Part shown: positions 8 through 44,606 of the stretch, in pieces | Layout: each line of letters starts with the position of its first letter | How positions within the stretch are numbered: the first letter of the stretch is position 1 | Position numbers and translations under genes: made by a program | Virus record (IMG/VR): IMGVR_UViG_3300030085_002431 | Location: 186,001 to 250,000 of that record | DNA length: 64,000 nt | Reading direction: 5' to 3' (one strand) | The notes under the pieces: model-generated | Seen by the model: the letters and a program-made list of their open reading frames with translations, nothing else | What the model was told of the DNA's origin: nothing | Databases searched by the model: none

Positions 8-1207
8 ATGGGTGCTATCTCATTGTATGGAAATACTGGTACATCACCATTCCGTGATTGTGCAAGAAGAACTGCTAATCCAACAAAACAGTCTGACCAA
101 TCACCAATGCCTCCTGGCATGATTGCACCAAATTGCATACCACCAGAAATTGAAGTTTTTGGTGATGGTGTTCTAGGACAAGTCCTTCCAATTGTTGGTA
201 AAGATGGTGGAATTTTAACTGTAAAGGTTATTAATCCAGGTAAGGGTTATTCAAAACCACCATCAATTAATATTATTGATAATACCAATCATGGTAATGG
301 TGCCAGATTACAAGCATCTATTGAAGATGGTAGAATAAGCAACGTTTATGTATTAAACCCAGGTTCTGGGTATTGTCCAGGAAATTATTCATCCATAGTA
401 TCTGATCCATCTTATGTTGTTTTTGCTGATAAGTATTCTGTATTTGAAGGTGATAGTGTAACATTTACTATTCAAACTGAAAATGTTCCTGATGGAAATA
501 AAGTAGAATGGTATTTTAGTGGAGATGTTTCAATAGATGACTTTGATTCTCCAACTGAACTGAGTGGTGAATTGGAAATCAAAAATGGTGAAGCAACTCT
601 TATAGCAAAAATTAGACAAGACAGTGTTACTGAACCTGTAGAAACACTATTTTTCGACTTATATGATAGTGGTGGAGATTATGTTGCAAGGACTAGGGTC
701 TTCCTCAATAATAGACTTTCACCAGTTTTAACACCAGAACCAGACGAACCAGTAGAGTCTCCACCAGGAACACCAGTTCCAAAAACTCCAGACGGTGGTA
801 CTTCTCCTGGAATTGGAACTGGTGGTGGTATTATTCCTGGAATTGGAACTGGTGGCACTGGTGGAACTGGAACTGGAGGTGGTGACCCTGGAATTGGAAC
901 TAATTTTGTTGGTATTATTACTAATATTATTGTTGATAGACCAGGATTTGGATATTCCACTGGTGATAGTGTTGAATTTGGTGGTTGTGTTTATAACCTT
1001 AAGGTCACTGAAACTGGTTCTATTGTTGGGGTTGAGTCTGCATCTTCATGTAAAAATGCTTACGAAGAAAATCCTGGAGAAGGTGTTATTACCACAACTA
1101 ATGGTCAAGCAGGAAGATTATTCGCAGTCTTAGAATTCACTCCTCTTACTAACAAAGTCACAGTTGTCGATGAGTTTGGTGTTATCTCAGTTGTTGATTG
1201 TGTCTAA
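8..1207 (+). CDS. Baseplate hub/gp5-like virion protein, C-terminal part (probably begins upstream of the window)
   Basis: Frame is open from the window edge. Repeated V.NPG.GY motifs typical of cyanophage structural proteins, a Calx-beta-like EGDSVTFT segment and a Gly/Thr/Pro linker. Lies before tail genes. Confidence 0.55.
   Translation: MGAISLYGNTGTSPFRDCARRTANPTKQSDQSPMPPGMIAPNCIPPEIEVFGDGVLGQVLPIVGKDGGILTVKVINPGKGYSKPPSINIIDNTNHGNGARLQASIEDGRISNVYVLNPGSGYCPGNYSSIVSDPSYVVFADKYSVFEGDSVTFTIQTENVPDGNKVEWYFSGDVSIDDFDSPTELSGELEIKNGEATLIAKIRQDSVTEPVETLFFDLYDSGGDYVARTRVFLNNRLSPVLTPEPDEPVESPPGTPVPKTPDGGTSPGIGTGGGIIPGIGTGGTGGTGTGGGDPGIGTNFVGIITNIIVDRPGFGYSTGDSVEFGGCVYNLKVTETGSIVGVESASSCKNAYEENPGEGVITTTNGQAGRLFAVLEFTPLTNKVTVVDEFGVISVVDCV
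805..901 (+). repeat. Gly/Thr-rich coding repeat (cctggaattggaact x3)
   Basis: Three copies encoding PGIGT within a low-complexity linker. Confidence 0.8.
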
Positions 1208-4523: not shown

Positions 4524-7500
4524 ATGGCGGACAGATATCCCTTAGTAGCCAACTCTTCCACAAATAGGATAGAAGAGTTAGCAATAAATGATAATTTAAA
4601 TCTAAACAACAACGGAATTGTTGGTGCGTCTACAGTACGGGCAAGTAGTTTTATTGGTGACTTAGTTGGTACTGCAACAACTTCCACGCAATTAACAAGT
4701 GCTTCTAATATTTTAGATGGCATTCTGCCTACAGACAGATTAAGTGGTAATTATAATATTGGTGTATCGACAGCAGATACTCTAACAAATGCTGCAAATA
4801 TTTTAAGTGGAACTGTCCCTAGGGGTAGATTGGATGGTGAATATGATATTGATATAACAGGAACTGCTTCAACTGCAGGTGCATTATCCAATGCTTCAGC
4901 AATTAGTGGTGGTACAATTCCAGCATCTGTACTATCTGGTACTTACAACATTGATATTTCTGGTACGGCATATCGTTCAGTTGGTGCTGCATTATCAATT
5001 ACTGTTCAAAATCAAACTGATAATCAGAATCAATACGTTCTTTTTGCTAAACATACAAATACTGATGCTAGTGCGTTCGTAAATCCAGGTGGACTTACAT
5101 ATAATCCAGGACAAAACTACCTAGGCATTAATACAAGTTTACCAGAGTTTGAACTAGATGTTCTTGGTGATATTAGAGCATCTGGAATCAGTAGTTCAAA
5201 TGTTTCTTTTGCAAACACTGCAACTATTGGTTCACTTAAAGGACTGACTGCTATTGATTCAACCAGTATCAGTACGATTCAAGTATCACTTGGTCTTGAC
5301 CAGTTAAATGACCTGACTGTTATTGGTATTAGTACATTTGAGACTCTCATAGTTCAAAACCAAACGACACTTAATGATTTAAATGCAACTGGTGTCTCTA
5401 CTATTGCAAATGCAAATATAACAGAACTGACGGCAGGAAACTCCAACATTGGAATTGCTACTGCCACAGAACTCAGTGTAGGAATTGGAACTACGGCACA
5501 GACAGTAGTTAGTAGTACAAGAGAATTACAAAATATTGTTGGTGTTGATACTGTAACTTCACAAACTCTCCGTGATAATCTAGGTCTAACTCAATTAGAC
5601 AGCATTAATGTTACGGGTCTCAGTACATTTGCGGATATTGATGCAGATGAAGTAGGTGTCTCAACATTAACTGCAGGAACAGTAAATGCTACAACCTACT
5701 TAGGTAATGGTGCTGCACTTGCTGGAATCGTTACTCAAATCACCGCAGGGATTGGAGTTACACTATCACCATCTAATGGTGTAGGAAACGTACAAATCAA
5801 TGCTTACAGACCAGTTGGCAAGACAATCTTTGTTGCTAAGTCTGGTGATGACAATAATACTGGATTGACTGATAGTCATCCAAAACTAACAATTAAAGCT
5901 GCTGCAGCAGTTGCAGAAGCAGGTGATACTATTAAAGTATATCCTGGTCTTTATCAAGAAGCAAACCCAATTGTACTTAATAAGTTCGTTGCTGTTGAGG
6001 GTCTAGAACTAAGAAACTGCCAGGTAAGTGCATCAAATTCTGCTTTAGATCTCTTCCATGTTAATAATGGTTGCCATATTACTGACCTAAGTTTTGTTGG
6101 TCCTGATGCAACAGGTGGTGCTGCTGCTGTAGCATTCAACCCACTATCGGGTGTTTCTTCTGACAGATTCTTTGATGGTGCAAGACTCATCCGAATGAAT
6201 CTGGATTACATTGCCCGTGAAGCAGTTGGTTTCCTTACCAGTACAGATTATCTAGACCCACCATTTGAAGTAACACCAGGTGGTCCAACTGATTGTGCTG
6301 ATGATATCAAAGATGTCTTCAGAGCAGTGATGTTTGATATCACTAGAGGAGGAAACTCTAAGTGTGTTGGTGCTGGTAAGTCATACTTCTCTGAAGCAGG
6401 AGCACTTCTTCACGTTACTGGAACAGATGCAAATGGATATAGTGTAAAGGATGCAACGATTGCAGCAATGAATAAGGCTGTTGGAATTGCATTTTCTTGT
6501 ATTACTAATGTTTCTTGGACTGGTGGATATCAAAATGAATTCTATCAAGTAAAAGACGTTGGAATTTACGCAGACTCTGCAACTGGTTCTAACCAAGACT
6601 TTGGTTCATGTGCAAATGTTAAATCTGCAATCAATACTTGCGTAGGTATTGTTACAACAATCATTGGTGCTGGAACTACTGGAAACATTAACGCAGGAAT
6701 CAATACAACATATCCTGGTAACAATGGTCAAGGTGCTCCAACCGAAAATCATTCTTCATTCTCCCCTGGTGTTGGTCCAATTACTCAAGGTCCATACATC
6801 AGAAACTGCACAAACTTTATCGGTAACAGCATTGGTCTAAAGGTTGATGGTTTCAATGCAGAACCAGGAGACCTAGATGATATTGGTGTTACTGGTTCAA
6901 TGTCAGTTGACTCCTACACTCAATTTAATCAAGGTGGCATTGGTGTTTCAGTTTCTAATGGTGCATATGCTCAGTTAGTTTCACTATTCACTATTTGCAA
7001 TGAAGAAGCAGTTGTTTCAACTTCTGGTGGTCAACTCGACTTAACAAACTCCAACTCTTCTTTTGGAACTAAAGGTCTTGTTTCTAGAGGTGTTGGAAAT
7101 AATGGAACTAAGTCAATTTATACATTAACTGGTGTAGGACAAACAGAAGCACTGGCAAGACAAAATGAAGTTGTTGTTTCTGGAGTAGGAACATTTAGAC
7201 CATATGATGGTCAAGTCTTATACTTTGACCAACTATATCAGTCCGTCCAGGAAATTAGAGTGTTAGATGCAGGTAACAATTATACCACTGCACCTAGAGT
7301 TACTATTGATGCACCAGTAGGACAGAATGGAATTACGGCACAAGCAACTGCAACCGTAGAGAATGGAAGAATTGCAAGCATAACAGTTATTACTGCTGGT
7401 TCTCAATACGATACAACTCCAAGTGTTACTGTCGAAGGACCAGTTGGTGGTGGTGTAACCGCAACTGCAGAAGTAGCAGTAATGTCACCAATTTATTATA

Positions 7501-40983: not shown

Positions 40984-41580
40984 ATGGATTTTATTTTAGA
41001 AACTTACATTAAAGATATTTCTATCTGTGACCGTTTAGTTGACTTTTTCAATAATTCAGAGTATTCTAGATTAAGAAAGAGACCAGGGACTACAAGTGGT
41101 GGAATTACTCCTACACAAAAAGAGTCTACGGATCTTTCAATTTTTCCTCAAGAATTTAGTGAACCAGAATTAAGTCCAATTGGTGATTACATCCCACAAT
41201 TATTTGGTTGTGTAGATGAATATGTTGCAAAATATGCATGGTGTAACGCATCTACAGCTCAATTTGGAATCCTAGAAAGAATTAATATTCAGTTCTACAA
41301 ACCTGGAGAGGCATTTCATGGATGGCATTTTGAACGTGGTAGTTCTGATTTCCCTGCTTGCGGAAGACATCTAGTTTGGATGACATATTTGAACGATGTT
41401 GATGATGGTGGTGGTACAGAATTCTTTTATCAAGAAAAAGTAACCACTGCAAGAAAAGGAAAAACTGTTATTTGGCCAGCAGATTGGACACATACACATA
41501 AAGGTGAAGTTTCCAACACTGAGCACAAATATATAATTACTGGTTGGTTAAATTACGACCTTACTTCTATAAAGATGTAA
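40984..41580 (+). CDS. 2OG-Fe(II) oxygenase
   Basis: WHFE...R.LVWMTYLNDV..GG.TEF...WPA.WTH.HKG...KYIITGW. Confidence 0.88.
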   Translation: MDFILETYIKDISICDRLVDFFNNSEYSRLRKRPGTTSGGITPTQKESTDLSIFPQEFSEPELSPIGDYIPQLFGCVDEYVAKYAWCNASTAQFGILERINIQFYKPGEAFHGWHFERGSSDFPACGRHLVWMTYLNDVDDGGGTEFFYQEKVTTARKGKTVIWPADWTHTHKGEVSNTEHKYIITGWLNYDLTSIKM

Positions 41581-41588
41581 TAAGTATT

Positions 41589-41673
41589 GGAGAGGTGGTC
41601 GAGTGGTTTATGGCACTGGTCTTGAAAACCAGCGATGTGCAAGCATCCGTGGGTTCAAATCCCACCCTCTCCG
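41589..41673 (+). tRNA. tRNA-Ser(UGA)
   Basis: GGAGAGG/CCTCTCC; loop CTTGAAA; long variable arm. Confidence 0.93.
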
Positions 41674-41702
41674 TTGACAGCACTAGCATTTTATGTTATA
41701 CT
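41674..41702 (+). promoter_or_regulatory. sigma70-type promoter
   Basis: TTGACA-17-TATACT with extended TG. Confidence 0.85.
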
Positions 41703-41708
41703 GTCTAG

Positions 41709-41779
41709 GTCAAGCAAATTACTTGACTGCGGTATTCCCCTTTGATGGATTCAGGAATAGCGGCGATAGGAATCCATCA
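41709..41779 (+). ncRNA. Hairpin plus H-type pseudoknot in the leader of tRNA-Val/Pro
   Basis: GTCAAG/CTTGAC; TATTCC/GGAATA crossed with TGATGGATTC/GAATCCATCA. Confidence 0.55.
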
Positions 41780-41782
41780 TAT

Positions 41783-41857
41783 GCTTGAATAGCTCAGAGG
41801 TAGAGCATCTCCTTTACACGGAGGCGGTCGGGGGTTCGATCCCCTCTTCAAGCACCA
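41783..41857 (+). tRNA. tRNA-Val(UAC)
   Basis: GCTTGAA/TTCAAGC; loop TTTACAC; encoded CCA. Confidence 0.92.
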
Positions 41858-41931
41858 CGGGACTTAGTTCAGTTTGGTAGAACGCTGCTTTTGGGAAGCA
41901 GAGGTCACAGGTTCAAATCCTGTAGTCCCGA
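41858..41931 (+). tRNA. tRNA-Pro(UGG)
   Basis: CGGGACT/AGTCCCG; loop TTTGGGA. Confidence 0.92.
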
Positions 41932-41963
41932 TTCCCTTCGGGGAACCTATCATATTCTTTATC

Positions 41964-42134
41964 ATGAAAATCAACTTATGGTATTCTAAGAGTATGTCGC
42001 AATGGCGGTGGACTCTTACAGAAGAGTTTAAGAATGGAGTTACTAAACTGGAACAGCATTCTGGTCAACACCCATTTCTTAGAGATGCTATGAATGATGT
42101 CGCTAACACAGTAGAATATCTTTTGGATAAATGA
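41964..42134 (+). CDS. Small hypothetical protein
   Basis: MKINLWYS..M.QWRWTL...LR.AM.DVA.TVEY. Confidence 0.65.
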   Translation: MKINLWYSKSMSQWRWTLTEEFKNGVTKLEQHSGQHPFLRDAMNDVANTVEYLLDK

Positions 42135-42838
42135 ACGTTATTAGTTTTCCTTCACCTTTTATTGCACAGTCTTCCATTGATGAAAAACTCCATTTGGAGT
42201 TGAAGTGTATGTACACTGAGATGGTACAAAAAGACCTGAGTCCGAATAAACAAAATTTTGCTGATGGTGACTTTAAAAGATTTAGTTCTAAAGCAAATAA
42301 TTACGAATCAGAAGTCTGGGGTGCTGGTGAATTAGAAGACTATAACGGTCGATTAGCAAAGCAACTTCAAAAAGCTTTCAATAAGGTAATTGAACATCAA
42401 CAATTTCCTCAGATATGTGTAGCTAGTAAAATTGATAAAGTATGGTGGGAGTTTTATGAACCCTATGGGTGTCGTCCAGTAGTTAATTATCCATGTTCTG
42501 ATTTTACAGGAATTTATGTAGTTGATTGTCAACAACATGATGTGATTAACTTCACTAGTCCTTTGATTTCTGTGACTTCAGGAAAGACACATTCTCCAGA
42601 AATAAAAGATGGAGATGTTCTTATTGCTCCTAGTGAACTTTTGATATCATCAAAGACATTTACTAAAAAATCTCTACTGTTCTATTTCACCATTGATTGC
42701 CAGTGGCAAGACTATGATGTTAAAACAAAAGAAGAACTATTTGGTCTTGAACAACAAAGTTCTGCTTTCAAACAAAAGTCTAGAAAAAGACTTTCTGGTT
42801 CAGTTGATGACCGTGTTAGACTGGGTGGGTATTTTTAG
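42131..42838 (+). CDS. Degenerate 2OG-Fe(II) oxygenase-like protein
   Basis: F.SP...GIY...P....GD.LI.PS.L fold motifs; metal-binding His residues not evident. Confidence 0.5.
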   Translation: MNVISFPSPFIAQSSIDEKLHLELKCMYTEMVQKDLSPNKQNFADGDFKRFSSKANNYESEVWGAGELEDYNGRLAKQLQKAFNKVIEHQQFPQICVASKIDKVWWEFYEPYGCRPVVNYPCSDFTGIYVVDCQQHDVINFTSPLISVTSGKTHSPEIKDGDVLIAPSELLISSKTFTKKSLLFYFTIDCQWQDYDVKTKEELFGLEQQSSAFKQKSRKRLSGSVDDRVRLGGYF

Positions 42839-42850
42839 GGTATGTACTAA

Positions 42851-42922
42851 TCCTCTTTAGCTCAGCGGTAGAGCGAACGACTGTTAATCGTTTGGTCCCT
42901 GGTTCGATCCCAGGAAGGGGAG
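42851..42922 (+). tRNA. tRNA-Asn(GUU)
   Basis: TCCTCTT/AAGGGGA; loop CTGTTAA. Confidence 0.92.
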
Positions 42923-42925
42923 TCT

Positions 42926-43007
42926 GTCGATGTGGCGGAATTGGTATACGCGCTGGGTTTAGGTTCCAGTGGAGCAATCCATGAAGGTTCAAGTCCTTTC
43001 ATCGACA
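42926..43007 (+). tRNA. tRNA-Leu(UAG)
   Basis: GTCGATG/CATCGAC; loop TTTAGGT; variable arm. Confidence 0.92.
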
Positions 43008-43017
43008 CTTCTTCATT

Positions 43018-43209
43018 ATGAAATTCTCTGAATATACATTTGGGGGTCGTCCTATTACTCCCATAAATCTTCTTCTTCTCATTAGTGAAATGGAAGGTAC
43101 TTACCAACATCTCAAATATATGGGATTTGAGGAAGATATGAATATTATTGATGAAATGAAGAAAAAGTACTATAAAATGTACTTCAAACTTAATAAAAAA
43201 GAAAAATGA
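43018..43209 (+). CDS. Hypothetical protein
   Basis: LISEMEG.YQHLKYMGF.EDM. Confidence 0.6.
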   Translation: MKFSEYTFGGRPITPINLLLLISEMEGTYQHLKYMGFEEDMNIIDEMKKKYYKMYFKLNKKEK

Positions 43210-43846: not shown

Positions 43847-44302
43847 ATGAAAATAGAAGTAGAAGGTTCTCCTGTTCTCAGAAAGAAATCAAAAAGAGTT
43901 TCAAATATAAACAACGATATCCGAAAGTTTTGTGCTGAGATGGCACAGACAATGAGAGATGCAAAGGGTATTGGAATTTCAGCACCCCAGGTGGGGGTAT
44001 CTAAACGCATCATAATTGTTAATGATGGAGGAAATGATTGGGTATTGATTAACCCAGAAATTATTTGGGATGATGGTAAAAGAGTTTCTTTTAATGAGGG
44101 TTGTTTAAGTGTTCCTGGTGAATATGCAGATATTCTCAGACCAGACAGGATTAGGGTGAAATATAGAGAACTATCTGGGAGACCTCAGACTGTAGACTTA
44201 GACGGTTTATTGTCAAGGATAGTGCAACATGAAATTGACCACTTAAATGGCATTCTTTTCACAGATTACTTGACTGATAGAGGAAGTGCGATTACTATAT
44301 AA
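43847..44302 (+). CDS. def: Peptide deformylase
   Basis: GIGISAPQVG, EGCLS, QHEIDHLNG; short C-terminus. Confidence 0.95.
   Translation: MKIEVEGSPVLRKKSKRVSNINNDIRKFCAEMAQTMRDAKGIGISAPQVGVSKRIIIVNDGGNDWVLINPEIIWDDGKRVSFNEGCLSVPGEYADILRPDRIRVKYRELSGRPQTVDLDGLLSRIVQHEIDHLNGILFTDYLTDRGSAITI
44270..44298 (+). promoter_or_regulatory. sigma70-type promoter for tmRNA (inside def 3' end)
   Basis: TTGACT-17-TACTAT. Confidence 0.7.
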
Positions 44303-44304
44303 AG

Positions 44305-44545
44305 TGTTCAAGAGGTTGCGAAGTCTGTTGTTTTGGACAGGGGTTCGATTCCCCTCACCTCCATTCATGGGGGTGCCATGGTTTCGACAGGGCAAAAAGG
44401 TCGTAATTGTTGACGGGACATAAACATAGATGCAAACACATCTGAAACCGCAGCAAATAACATTGTTGCATTCTCCCGCAGCACCGTTGCTGCCTGAATG
44501 GGGGATGGGGGATAAGTCTTCCTTCTAATCCAATAGACTCTTGGG
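44305..44545 (+). ncRNA. ssrA: Circularly permuted (two-piece) tmRNA, cyanobacterial type
   Basis: T arm GGGGTTCGATTCCCC plus CACCTCCA (to 44363) precedes the 5' piece GGGGGTG..GGTTTCGAC (from 44369); G3:U70; tag ORF 44453-44497 ANNIVAFSRSTVAA*. Confidence 0.9.
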
Positions 44546-44565
44546 GGTGAGATGCCCCTCTTTTT
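44543..44565 (+). terminator. Intrinsic terminator after tmRNA
   Basis: GGGGGT-gaga-TGCCCCT followed by CTTTTT. Confidence 0.7.
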
Positions 44566-44606
44566 GTATAAATACTCCAGAGTTAATTAAACTTAGGATA
44601 CTTTTT

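Follow-up and report, generated by a model that had tools for sequence, protein, structure and literature searches.

The 64,000-nt stretch of IMG/VR record IMGVR_UViG_3300030085_002431 that was analysed (positions 186,001 to 250,000 of the 250,613-bp record, hereafter the window) was read across positions 41400–42300. The features are all located on the plus strand. A tRNA-Ser(UGA) gene without an encoded CCA occupies 41589–41673 (ARAGORN; Rfam tRNA model, 57.9 bits) and ends one base before a sigma-70-type promoter (41674–41702), which consists of TTGACA (41674–41679), a 17-nt spacer with TG at 41694–41695, and TATACT (41697–41702). This is the best promoter-like site between 41000 and 43200, with 11 of 12 matches to the consensus. 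Six bases after the −10 hexamer, at the predicted transcription start, begins a hairpin (P1, 41709–41727) with the arms GUCAAG (41709–41714) and CUUGAC (41722–41727) and a 7-nt loop, to which G41708 and U41728 could add a wobble pair. The linker UGC (41728–41730), which together with C41727 forms the motif CUGC, is followed by the 5′ arm of stem 1 (41731–41738, GGUAUUCC), loop L1 (CCUU, 41739–41742), the 5′ arm of stem 2 (41743–41752, UGAUGGAUUC), a single A at the junction of the two stems (L2, 41753), the 3′ arm of stem 1 (41754–41761, GGAAUAGC), loop L3 (41762–41769, GGCGAUAG), and the 3′ arm of stem 2 (41770–41779, GAAUCCAUCA). The upper part of stem 1 pairs TATTCC (41733–41738) with GGAATA (41754–41759), and stem 2 is made up of 10 perfect pairs between TGATGGATTC and GAATCCATCA at the DNA level. 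The 5′ arm of stem 2 lies in the loop of stem 1 and its 3′ arm lies downstream of stem 1, which gives the topology of a classical H-type pseudoknot. After a 3-nt spacer (UAU, 41780–41782) begins tRNA-Val(UAC) (41783–41857) with an encoded CCA (41855–41857), which directly abuts tRNA-Pro(UGG) (41858–41931). Taken alone, P1, stem 1, and stem 2 are worth −6.0, −6.0, and −12.4 kcal/mol, respectively. The minimum-energy fold of the region contains only P1 and stem 2 and is unremarkable (z = −1.04), but this says little because the folding program cannot form pseudoknots, and the case for the structure therefore rests on comparison.

The element belongs to a widespread family. An exact 21-mer of the window has no match in viral contigs, whereas a short-query BLAST search at a loose E-value found matches of about 80% to 41723–41779 in intergenic DNA of Synechococcus phages S-SKS1, ACG-2014f, S-B43, and others, and in a marine single-cell virus. 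Inspection of four of these loci showed the same layout with different stem sequences. A gapped pattern built from the shared words matched at least 120 viral contigs, and the scans together place the element in well over 120. A BLAST search with a common variant of the element identified the cultured carriers as many ACG-2014f isolates, S-SCSM2R, S-SM2, SynMITS9220M01, RB11-B, S-H68, S-B05, Bellamy, S-B43, and S-SKS1. In most of these records nothing is annotated at the site, and in four a protein gene is annotated over it. AT-rich uncultured carriers are also T4-like cyanophages, with dam, hsp20, regA, and gp62 as neighbors. Among 185,579 prokaryote species the strict pattern hit nine records, of which only three short MAG contigs are true copies by the covariance model, most likely mis-binned phage DNA, and the rest are chance matches; this pattern search gave no evidence for a host copy that the phage might mimic. 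As the scans were seeded with conserved words, these numbers do not include more divergent members and their contexts.

An alignment of 110 distinct cores was used to count base pairs for the pseudoknot. In total 92.3% of cells form standard pairs, compared with 22–47% when the 3′ partners are slid by 1–3 columns, and none of 500 shuffles reaches the observed covariation score. Changes on both sides are seen in 12 of 18 pairs (372 cells), comprising six of eight pairs in stem 1 and six of ten in stem 2, where the three pairs UUC/GAA were fixed by the search pattern. Many pairs are G-U, which would be A-C mismatches on the other strand, indicating that the plus-strand RNA is the folded molecule. 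A lack of covariation in homologs had been set beforehand as the outcome that would refute the structure, and both stems covary. The preliminary description of a 6-bp hairpin and a compact H-type pseudoknot, located behind a TTGACA-17-TATACT promoter and ending 3 nt before tRNA-Val, is thus confirmed as an observation, apart from one detail of stem 1. The lower part of this stem had been drawn as CTGC-gg paired with GCGG, which the covariation does not support. Alignment column 8 instead pairs with column 38 (41731 and 41761) as GC in 77 sequences, UA in 30, and UG in 3, with none unpaired, whereas columns 9 and 37 (41732 and 41760) form a conserved non-standard purine-purine contact, unpaired in 105 of 110 sequences and mostly G opposite G. 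Stem 1 is therefore eight positions long, and CUGC is a near-invariant linker. L1 is 3–4 nt long over a stem 2 of 8–10 bp, and L3 is 8 nt long over the eight positions of stem 1; judged by textbook rules alone these lengths are plausible but at the minimum, and L1 grows with stem 2 in the longer of two size classes.

Because the first pattern fixed the conserved words, two further scans were run that each left one half of the element free. With only the 3′ half specified, 119 of 120 hits were real, and all of these kept the loop CCUU and the linker CUGC, with one near-exception; the closing pair of stem 1 was C-G or U-G. With the 5′ half specified and C41–G46 left free, L3 read GGC, then G (rarely U or A), A, U (rarely C or A), A, and G, with the variants GGCUAUAG, GGCGACAG, GGCAAUAG, and GGCGAAAG, giving the family consensus GGC-N-A-N-A-G. 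The single A of L2 was fixed by the search patterns. A stem of five or more pairs ending at the linker is present in 73% of 114 distinct upstream contexts, compared with 10% of shuffles, and the sequence of this P1 stem differs between lineages (GUUGA/UCAAC, GGUGGUU/GACCACU, GUCAG/CUGAC, and GCCAG/CUGGC). In the minimal members P1 is usually capped by GAAA or GAGA. In some lineages the P1 loop carries a conserved insertion of 100–250 nt, which is not recognized by Rfam either, while the closing stem and the pseudoknot are retained.

About 100 of 125 copies are preceded by a promoter scoring 9–12 of 12 (TTGACA-17-TATAAT), with the −10 hexamer ending 5–6 nt before the first paired base of P1, so that P1 starts at or next to the predicted +1. 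In some lineages this promoter lies within the 3′ end of the upstream protein gene. The element is normally single-copy, with one copy in the window's own virus record, one each in S-SKS1, ACG-2014f, S-B43, and two large IMG/VR records, and one in 48 of 50 further viral records; a second, slightly divergent copy exists in a few genomes, in front of tRNA-Pro. Of 117 distinct contexts, 61 have a tRNA starting 1–5 nt after stem 2. Counted over all 125 copies, of which 65 are tRNA-linked, this is tRNA-Arg(UCU) 49 times, tRNA-Pro(UGG) 14 times, and Thr and Val once each. Nine contexts have another consensus promoter within 80 nt, in 42 the element mostly precedes a protein gene, and in five the contig ends. 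In the copies linked to a coding sequence the start codon is mostly 5–30 nt past stem 2, in some up to about 110 nt. The spacing to the tRNA, on the same strand, is like that between tRNAs inside the arrays (0–4 nt), and 116 of 125 copies have no tRNA within 300 nt upstream, indicating that the element takes the first slot of the array. The window is one of the few cases with a tRNA (Ser) just upstream, but here the promoter separates the two. The downstream proteins have no common theme and include DUF6561, a Phd-like antitoxin, PstS-like and PurM-like proteins, a HAD phosphatase, and small unknowns. The phrog_552 protein that follows the element in S-SKS1-type loci is absent from the window's own genome, and no partner protein was found among the neighbors. 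The public RNA runs with related sequence are marine metatranscriptomes in the form of contigs, which mostly cover tRNAs and show no starts, ends, or levels. One 240-nt contig of a relative spans the pseudoknot core, but it also runs upstream of the predicted start into the promoter region and may be DNA or read-through, and thus proves neither the start nor transcription.

No Rfam 15 family, including manA, wcaG, glnA, preQ1, SAM-II/V, guanidine-III, c4, the ribozyme classes, and tRNA, reaches its gathering score on the element in the window or in 20 homologous loci. At E = 10 the only matches overlapping the element in the window are sX4 (14.2 bits against a gathering score of 70) and, on the minus strand, sn2343 (13.4 against 60), which we take as chance, and an expanded member of the family gave no match up to E = 5. 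ARAGORN and Rfam do not identify it as a tRNA. It is not an intrinsic terminator, as no terminator-like site was found in 41000–43200, and only S-SKS1-type copies have UUUU after stem 2. Tandem repeats next to a toxin endoribonuclease gene, as in type III (ToxI-like) antitoxin RNAs, are not seen, given one copy per genome and no toxin family among the neighbors that were scanned. Literature searches on cyanophage pseudoknots and tRNAs, on manA and wcaG, and on the conserved words as text found no description of the element, although an unnamed listing among the 10,006 candidate structured RNAs from IMG/VR (PMC10690425) cannot be excluded.

Several known RNAs can be compared with the element. 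The stable RNAs of the phage T4 tRNA gene cluster (species 1 and 2; rnaC, rnaD) are small structured RNAs of unknown function that are co-transcribed with the tRNAs and cut out by the tRNA-processing enzymes, and the carriers here are also T4-like phages. The T4 RNAs are longer and are not known to be pseudoknots at the head of the array, whereas the element has its own promoter and also occurs away from tRNAs. The cyanophage motifs manA (RF01745) and wcaG (RF01761), which are covariation-supported and of unknown mechanism (PMC2864571), occur in the same phages and the same genome islands. In ACG-2014f and S-B43 the order is pseudoknot, tRNA, manA RNA, tRNA, and in S-SKS1 a wcaG RNA lies about 600 nt downstream. 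Neither model scores on the element, inspection of the model alignments rejected homology with either motif, and at about 70 nt the element is much smaller than manA (192 positions) and has a different architecture. The c4 antisense RNA of phages P1/P7 (RF01695) is a phage small RNA of about 77 nt whose mature end is made by RNase P, but it is an antisense repressor with two target-pairing loops, is not a pseudoknot, and its model gives no match. H-type pseudoknot aptamers (preQ1-II, SAM-II/SAM-V, guanidine-III, and SAM/SAH) are two-stem pseudoknots with short loops, covarying stems, and near-invariant loops and junction. None of these models matches, and stem 2 of the element is unusually long (9–10 bp). 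The ompA 5′ hairpin and flaviviral xrRNAs provide examples of a base-paired 5′ end and of a compact, exonuclease-resistant pseudoknot at the start of a transcript, which corresponds to the nuclease-blocking idea of the preliminary description. However, xrRNAs thread a single-stranded 5′ end through a ring formed by a three-way junction, whereas here the 5′ end is inside a hairpin and there is no three-way junction, and stabilizing hairpins do not need invariant loops.

The anatomy, the conservation, the covariation, and the fixed register with a strong promoter and usually with a tRNA are established by our comparison, whereas expression, processing, stability, binding, and function are inferred from sequence. 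The functional options offered in the preliminary description, a small ncRNA released by RNase P, a nuclease-blocking element, or an unrecognized ribozyme or aptamer associated with phage tRNAs, are partly supported: the association with phage tRNAs is real but not exclusive, release by RNase P fits the anatomy best, the nuclease-blocking element and the aptamer remain rivals, and the ribozyme has no support. That the element is a large conserved family, usually single-copy and at the head of the tRNA array, was not foreseen. In the reading we favor, with a probability of roughly 0.5, host RNA polymerase would start at G41709 from a near-consensus early promoter, and the first 19 nt would fold into P1, so that the triphosphate 5′ end is base-paired from its first nucleotide. 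Nucleotides 41731–41779 would fold into the pseudoknot with the two stems stacked and joined by one A, the loop CCUU crossing the deep groove of stem 2 and the A-containing L3 running along the shallow groove of stem 1. RNase P would then cut at the 5′ end of tRNA-Val (41783) and free an RNA of 71–74 nt (74 nt including the 3-nt tail). With both ends held in helices this RNA should resist end-dependent nucleases, be long-lived, and accumulate early in infection, and it would probably act as an independent folded unit that binds a protein or small ligand through its near-invariant loop and linker nucleotides. Release of small phage RNAs and of RNAs flanking tRNAs by RNase P is established for P1/P7 c4 RNA and the T4 tRNA cluster. 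The single copy, the dedicated promoter, the nine contexts in which a second promoter makes the RNA its own transcription unit rather than the leader of the next gene, and the tolerance of large P1 insertions, as seen for peripheral domains of folded functional RNAs, favor a self-standing RNA. In about a third of contexts, however, the element lies 10–30 nt (in some cases up to about 110 nt) in front of a protein gene with no tRNA or terminator to define a 3′ end, and there looks like a 5′ UTR, and the near-invariant loops could serve fold stability alone.

The main rival, which is possible but less likely, is a cis-acting 5′ leader, in which the paired 5′ end and a mechanically stable pseudoknot protect the downstream tRNA precursor or early mRNA from 5′-end-dependent attack by RNase E or RNase J, or tune its processing or translation, with the released fragment being only a by-product. 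The position at the very 5′ end of a transcription unit and the copies directly upstream of start codons fit this view, 5′-terminal hairpins, for example the ompA leader, are known stabilizers, and the loops could reflect a very stable triplex-like fold. On the other hand, a genome has many early promoters yet only one copy, rarely two, of the element, tRNA precursors are processed quickly and hardly need 5′ protection, nine contexts have a second full promoter before the next gene, and a plain hairpin would be enough, leaving the near-invariant loops unexplained. A ligand-binding aptamer, acting as a riboswitch or as a trans-acting sensor that binds a metabolite or signaling nucleotide and alters downstream expression or sequesters the ligand, is unlikely. 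The conservation pattern is that of the H-type aptamers, some copies lie in 5′ UTRs, and P1 of the minimal members often carries a GNRA loop, a common tertiary-contact module. However, no expression platform is present, as there is neither a terminator-like site nor a sequestered ribosome-binding site (the AGGAA in L3 and stem 2 lies about 27 nt or more from the start codons), and the downstream genes, tRNA-Arg, Pro, Val, or Thr or unrelated proteins, do not belong to one pathway. A self-cleaving or otherwise catalytic RNA that helps mature the adjoining tRNA is very unlikely. Theta (minimal HDV-like) ribozymes of gut phages directly abut tRNAs on their 3′ side and are proposed to process their 3′ trailers (PMC10879173), and the element is likewise compact, close to the tRNA, and has invariant unpaired nucleotides. 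But no hammerhead, twister, pistol, hatchet, HDV, or other Rfam ribozyme model matches, only A41753 lies where the nested double pseudoknot of HDV-like ribozymes has P3/L3 and P1.1, and the element of marine cyanophages lies 5′ of the tRNA, where RNase P already acts, and also occurs without any tRNA. A DNA-level site such as a protein-binding palindrome or replication origin, or a chance fold, would suit the single copy and the ordinary fold energy but is disfavored by the plus-strand G-U compensations and the fixed register to +1 and to the tRNA 5′ end, and the more than 120 copies rule out chance.

A further possibility, also unlikely on present evidence but not excluded, is that the element is a new class of functional RNA with an activity of its own beyond a stable by-product or protective leader, either as a phage-made decoy or sponge RNA whose near-invariant pocket captures a host protein or a small signaling molecule early in infection, or as a new small ribozyme or aptamer class tied to phage tRNA arrays. 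T4-like cyanophages kill a large share of marine Synechococcus and Prochlorococcus, and their non-coding RNAs are barely explored. Structured small RNAs embedded in phage tRNA clusters are known, whereas this covarying pseudoknot RNA of about 70 nt, with near-invariant loops, a dedicated strong promoter predicted to be early, and more than a hundred natural variants, appears to be undescribed, being absent from Rfam 15 and unannotated in most isolate records that carry it. Such a profile has in the past led to riboswitches, ribozymes, and protein-sponging RNAs, and cultured phage-host pairs that carry the element exist (S-SKS1 on WH7803 and S-SM2 on WH8017), so that these hypotheses are open to direct testing. 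The finding also suggests that cyanophage tRNA arrays work as processing cassettes that release other structured RNAs, this one and manA. If so, the cis-regulatory label given to manA would need another look.

In the window, tRNA-Val carries an encoded CCA that directly abuts the first base of tRNA-Pro (positions 41855-41858), whereas tRNA-Ser upstream has no encoded CCA. The same tRNA-rich island, with 11 tRNA or tmRNA genes in the window, also contains a permuted (two-piece) tmRNA of the cyanobacterial type at 44274-44588 (+), which scores 133.6 bits on the cyano_tmRNA model and for which ARAGORN reads the tag peptide ANTSETAANNIVAFSRSTVAA. In the tRNA arrays of loci L005-L124 (numbered loci from the comparison of the pseudoknot element), gaps between neighboring tRNAs cluster at 71-79 nt in addition to the usual 0-4 nt, and these longer gaps may represent tRNAs that were missed by ARAGORN or further tRNA-sized RNA units. 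In two contigs, L046 (at about 2022-2110) and L108, the tRNA that normally follows the element is interrupted or displaced and a zinc-finger-like protein of about 155 amino acids (MNSCL.C.SPTK...) lies there instead, possibly the product of an inserted mobile endonuclease gene.

Comparison of the loci also shows variation in the element itself. In one lineage the P1 loop, upstream of the pseudoknot, holds a conserved domain of about 150-250 nt with shared blocks such as GAGGGAUAUGUGGUUCUACUGCCC and GGGGUUCAGGUGUAAGCGAUUCCCAGUAGGUAAAUUUGGG, as seen in L010 (at about 6775-6945) and also in L035, L041, L042, L053, L059, L067, L072, and L118. This insertion gives a predicted RNA of about 300 nt, and Rfam has no match to it. 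A second type of copy, found in L084 at 559-614 (-) and in L148 (phage S-SM2) at about 1200-1254, has GGCGACAG in loop L3. This type lies directly after the stop codon of a small conserved protein (ending ...HGVLSLVGRA), with no obvious promoter, and is followed by tRNA-Pro(UGG) and then by a Phd-like antitoxin gene. In the S-SM2 record the annotated tRNA-Pro coordinates lie about 54 nt downstream of where the tRNA sequence reads. Full-scoring copies of the cyanophage element (60-80 bits) are also carried by short contigs in MAGs labeled Verrucomicrobiota, Neomarinimicrobiota, and Acidimicrobiales (L126, L127, and L129); these contigs are probably phage DNA binned into bacterial genomes.

The manA RNA (RF01745), which is listed as cis-regulatory, is found right after the pseudoknot and its tRNA in two of the loci, at 1555-1913 of L002 (ACG-2014f) and at 1558-1916 of L003 (S-B43), where it sits between two tRNAs with only 1-2 nt on each side. 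This layout suggests that manA is cut out as a free RNA by the tRNA-processing enzymes, rather than acting as a 5' UTR.
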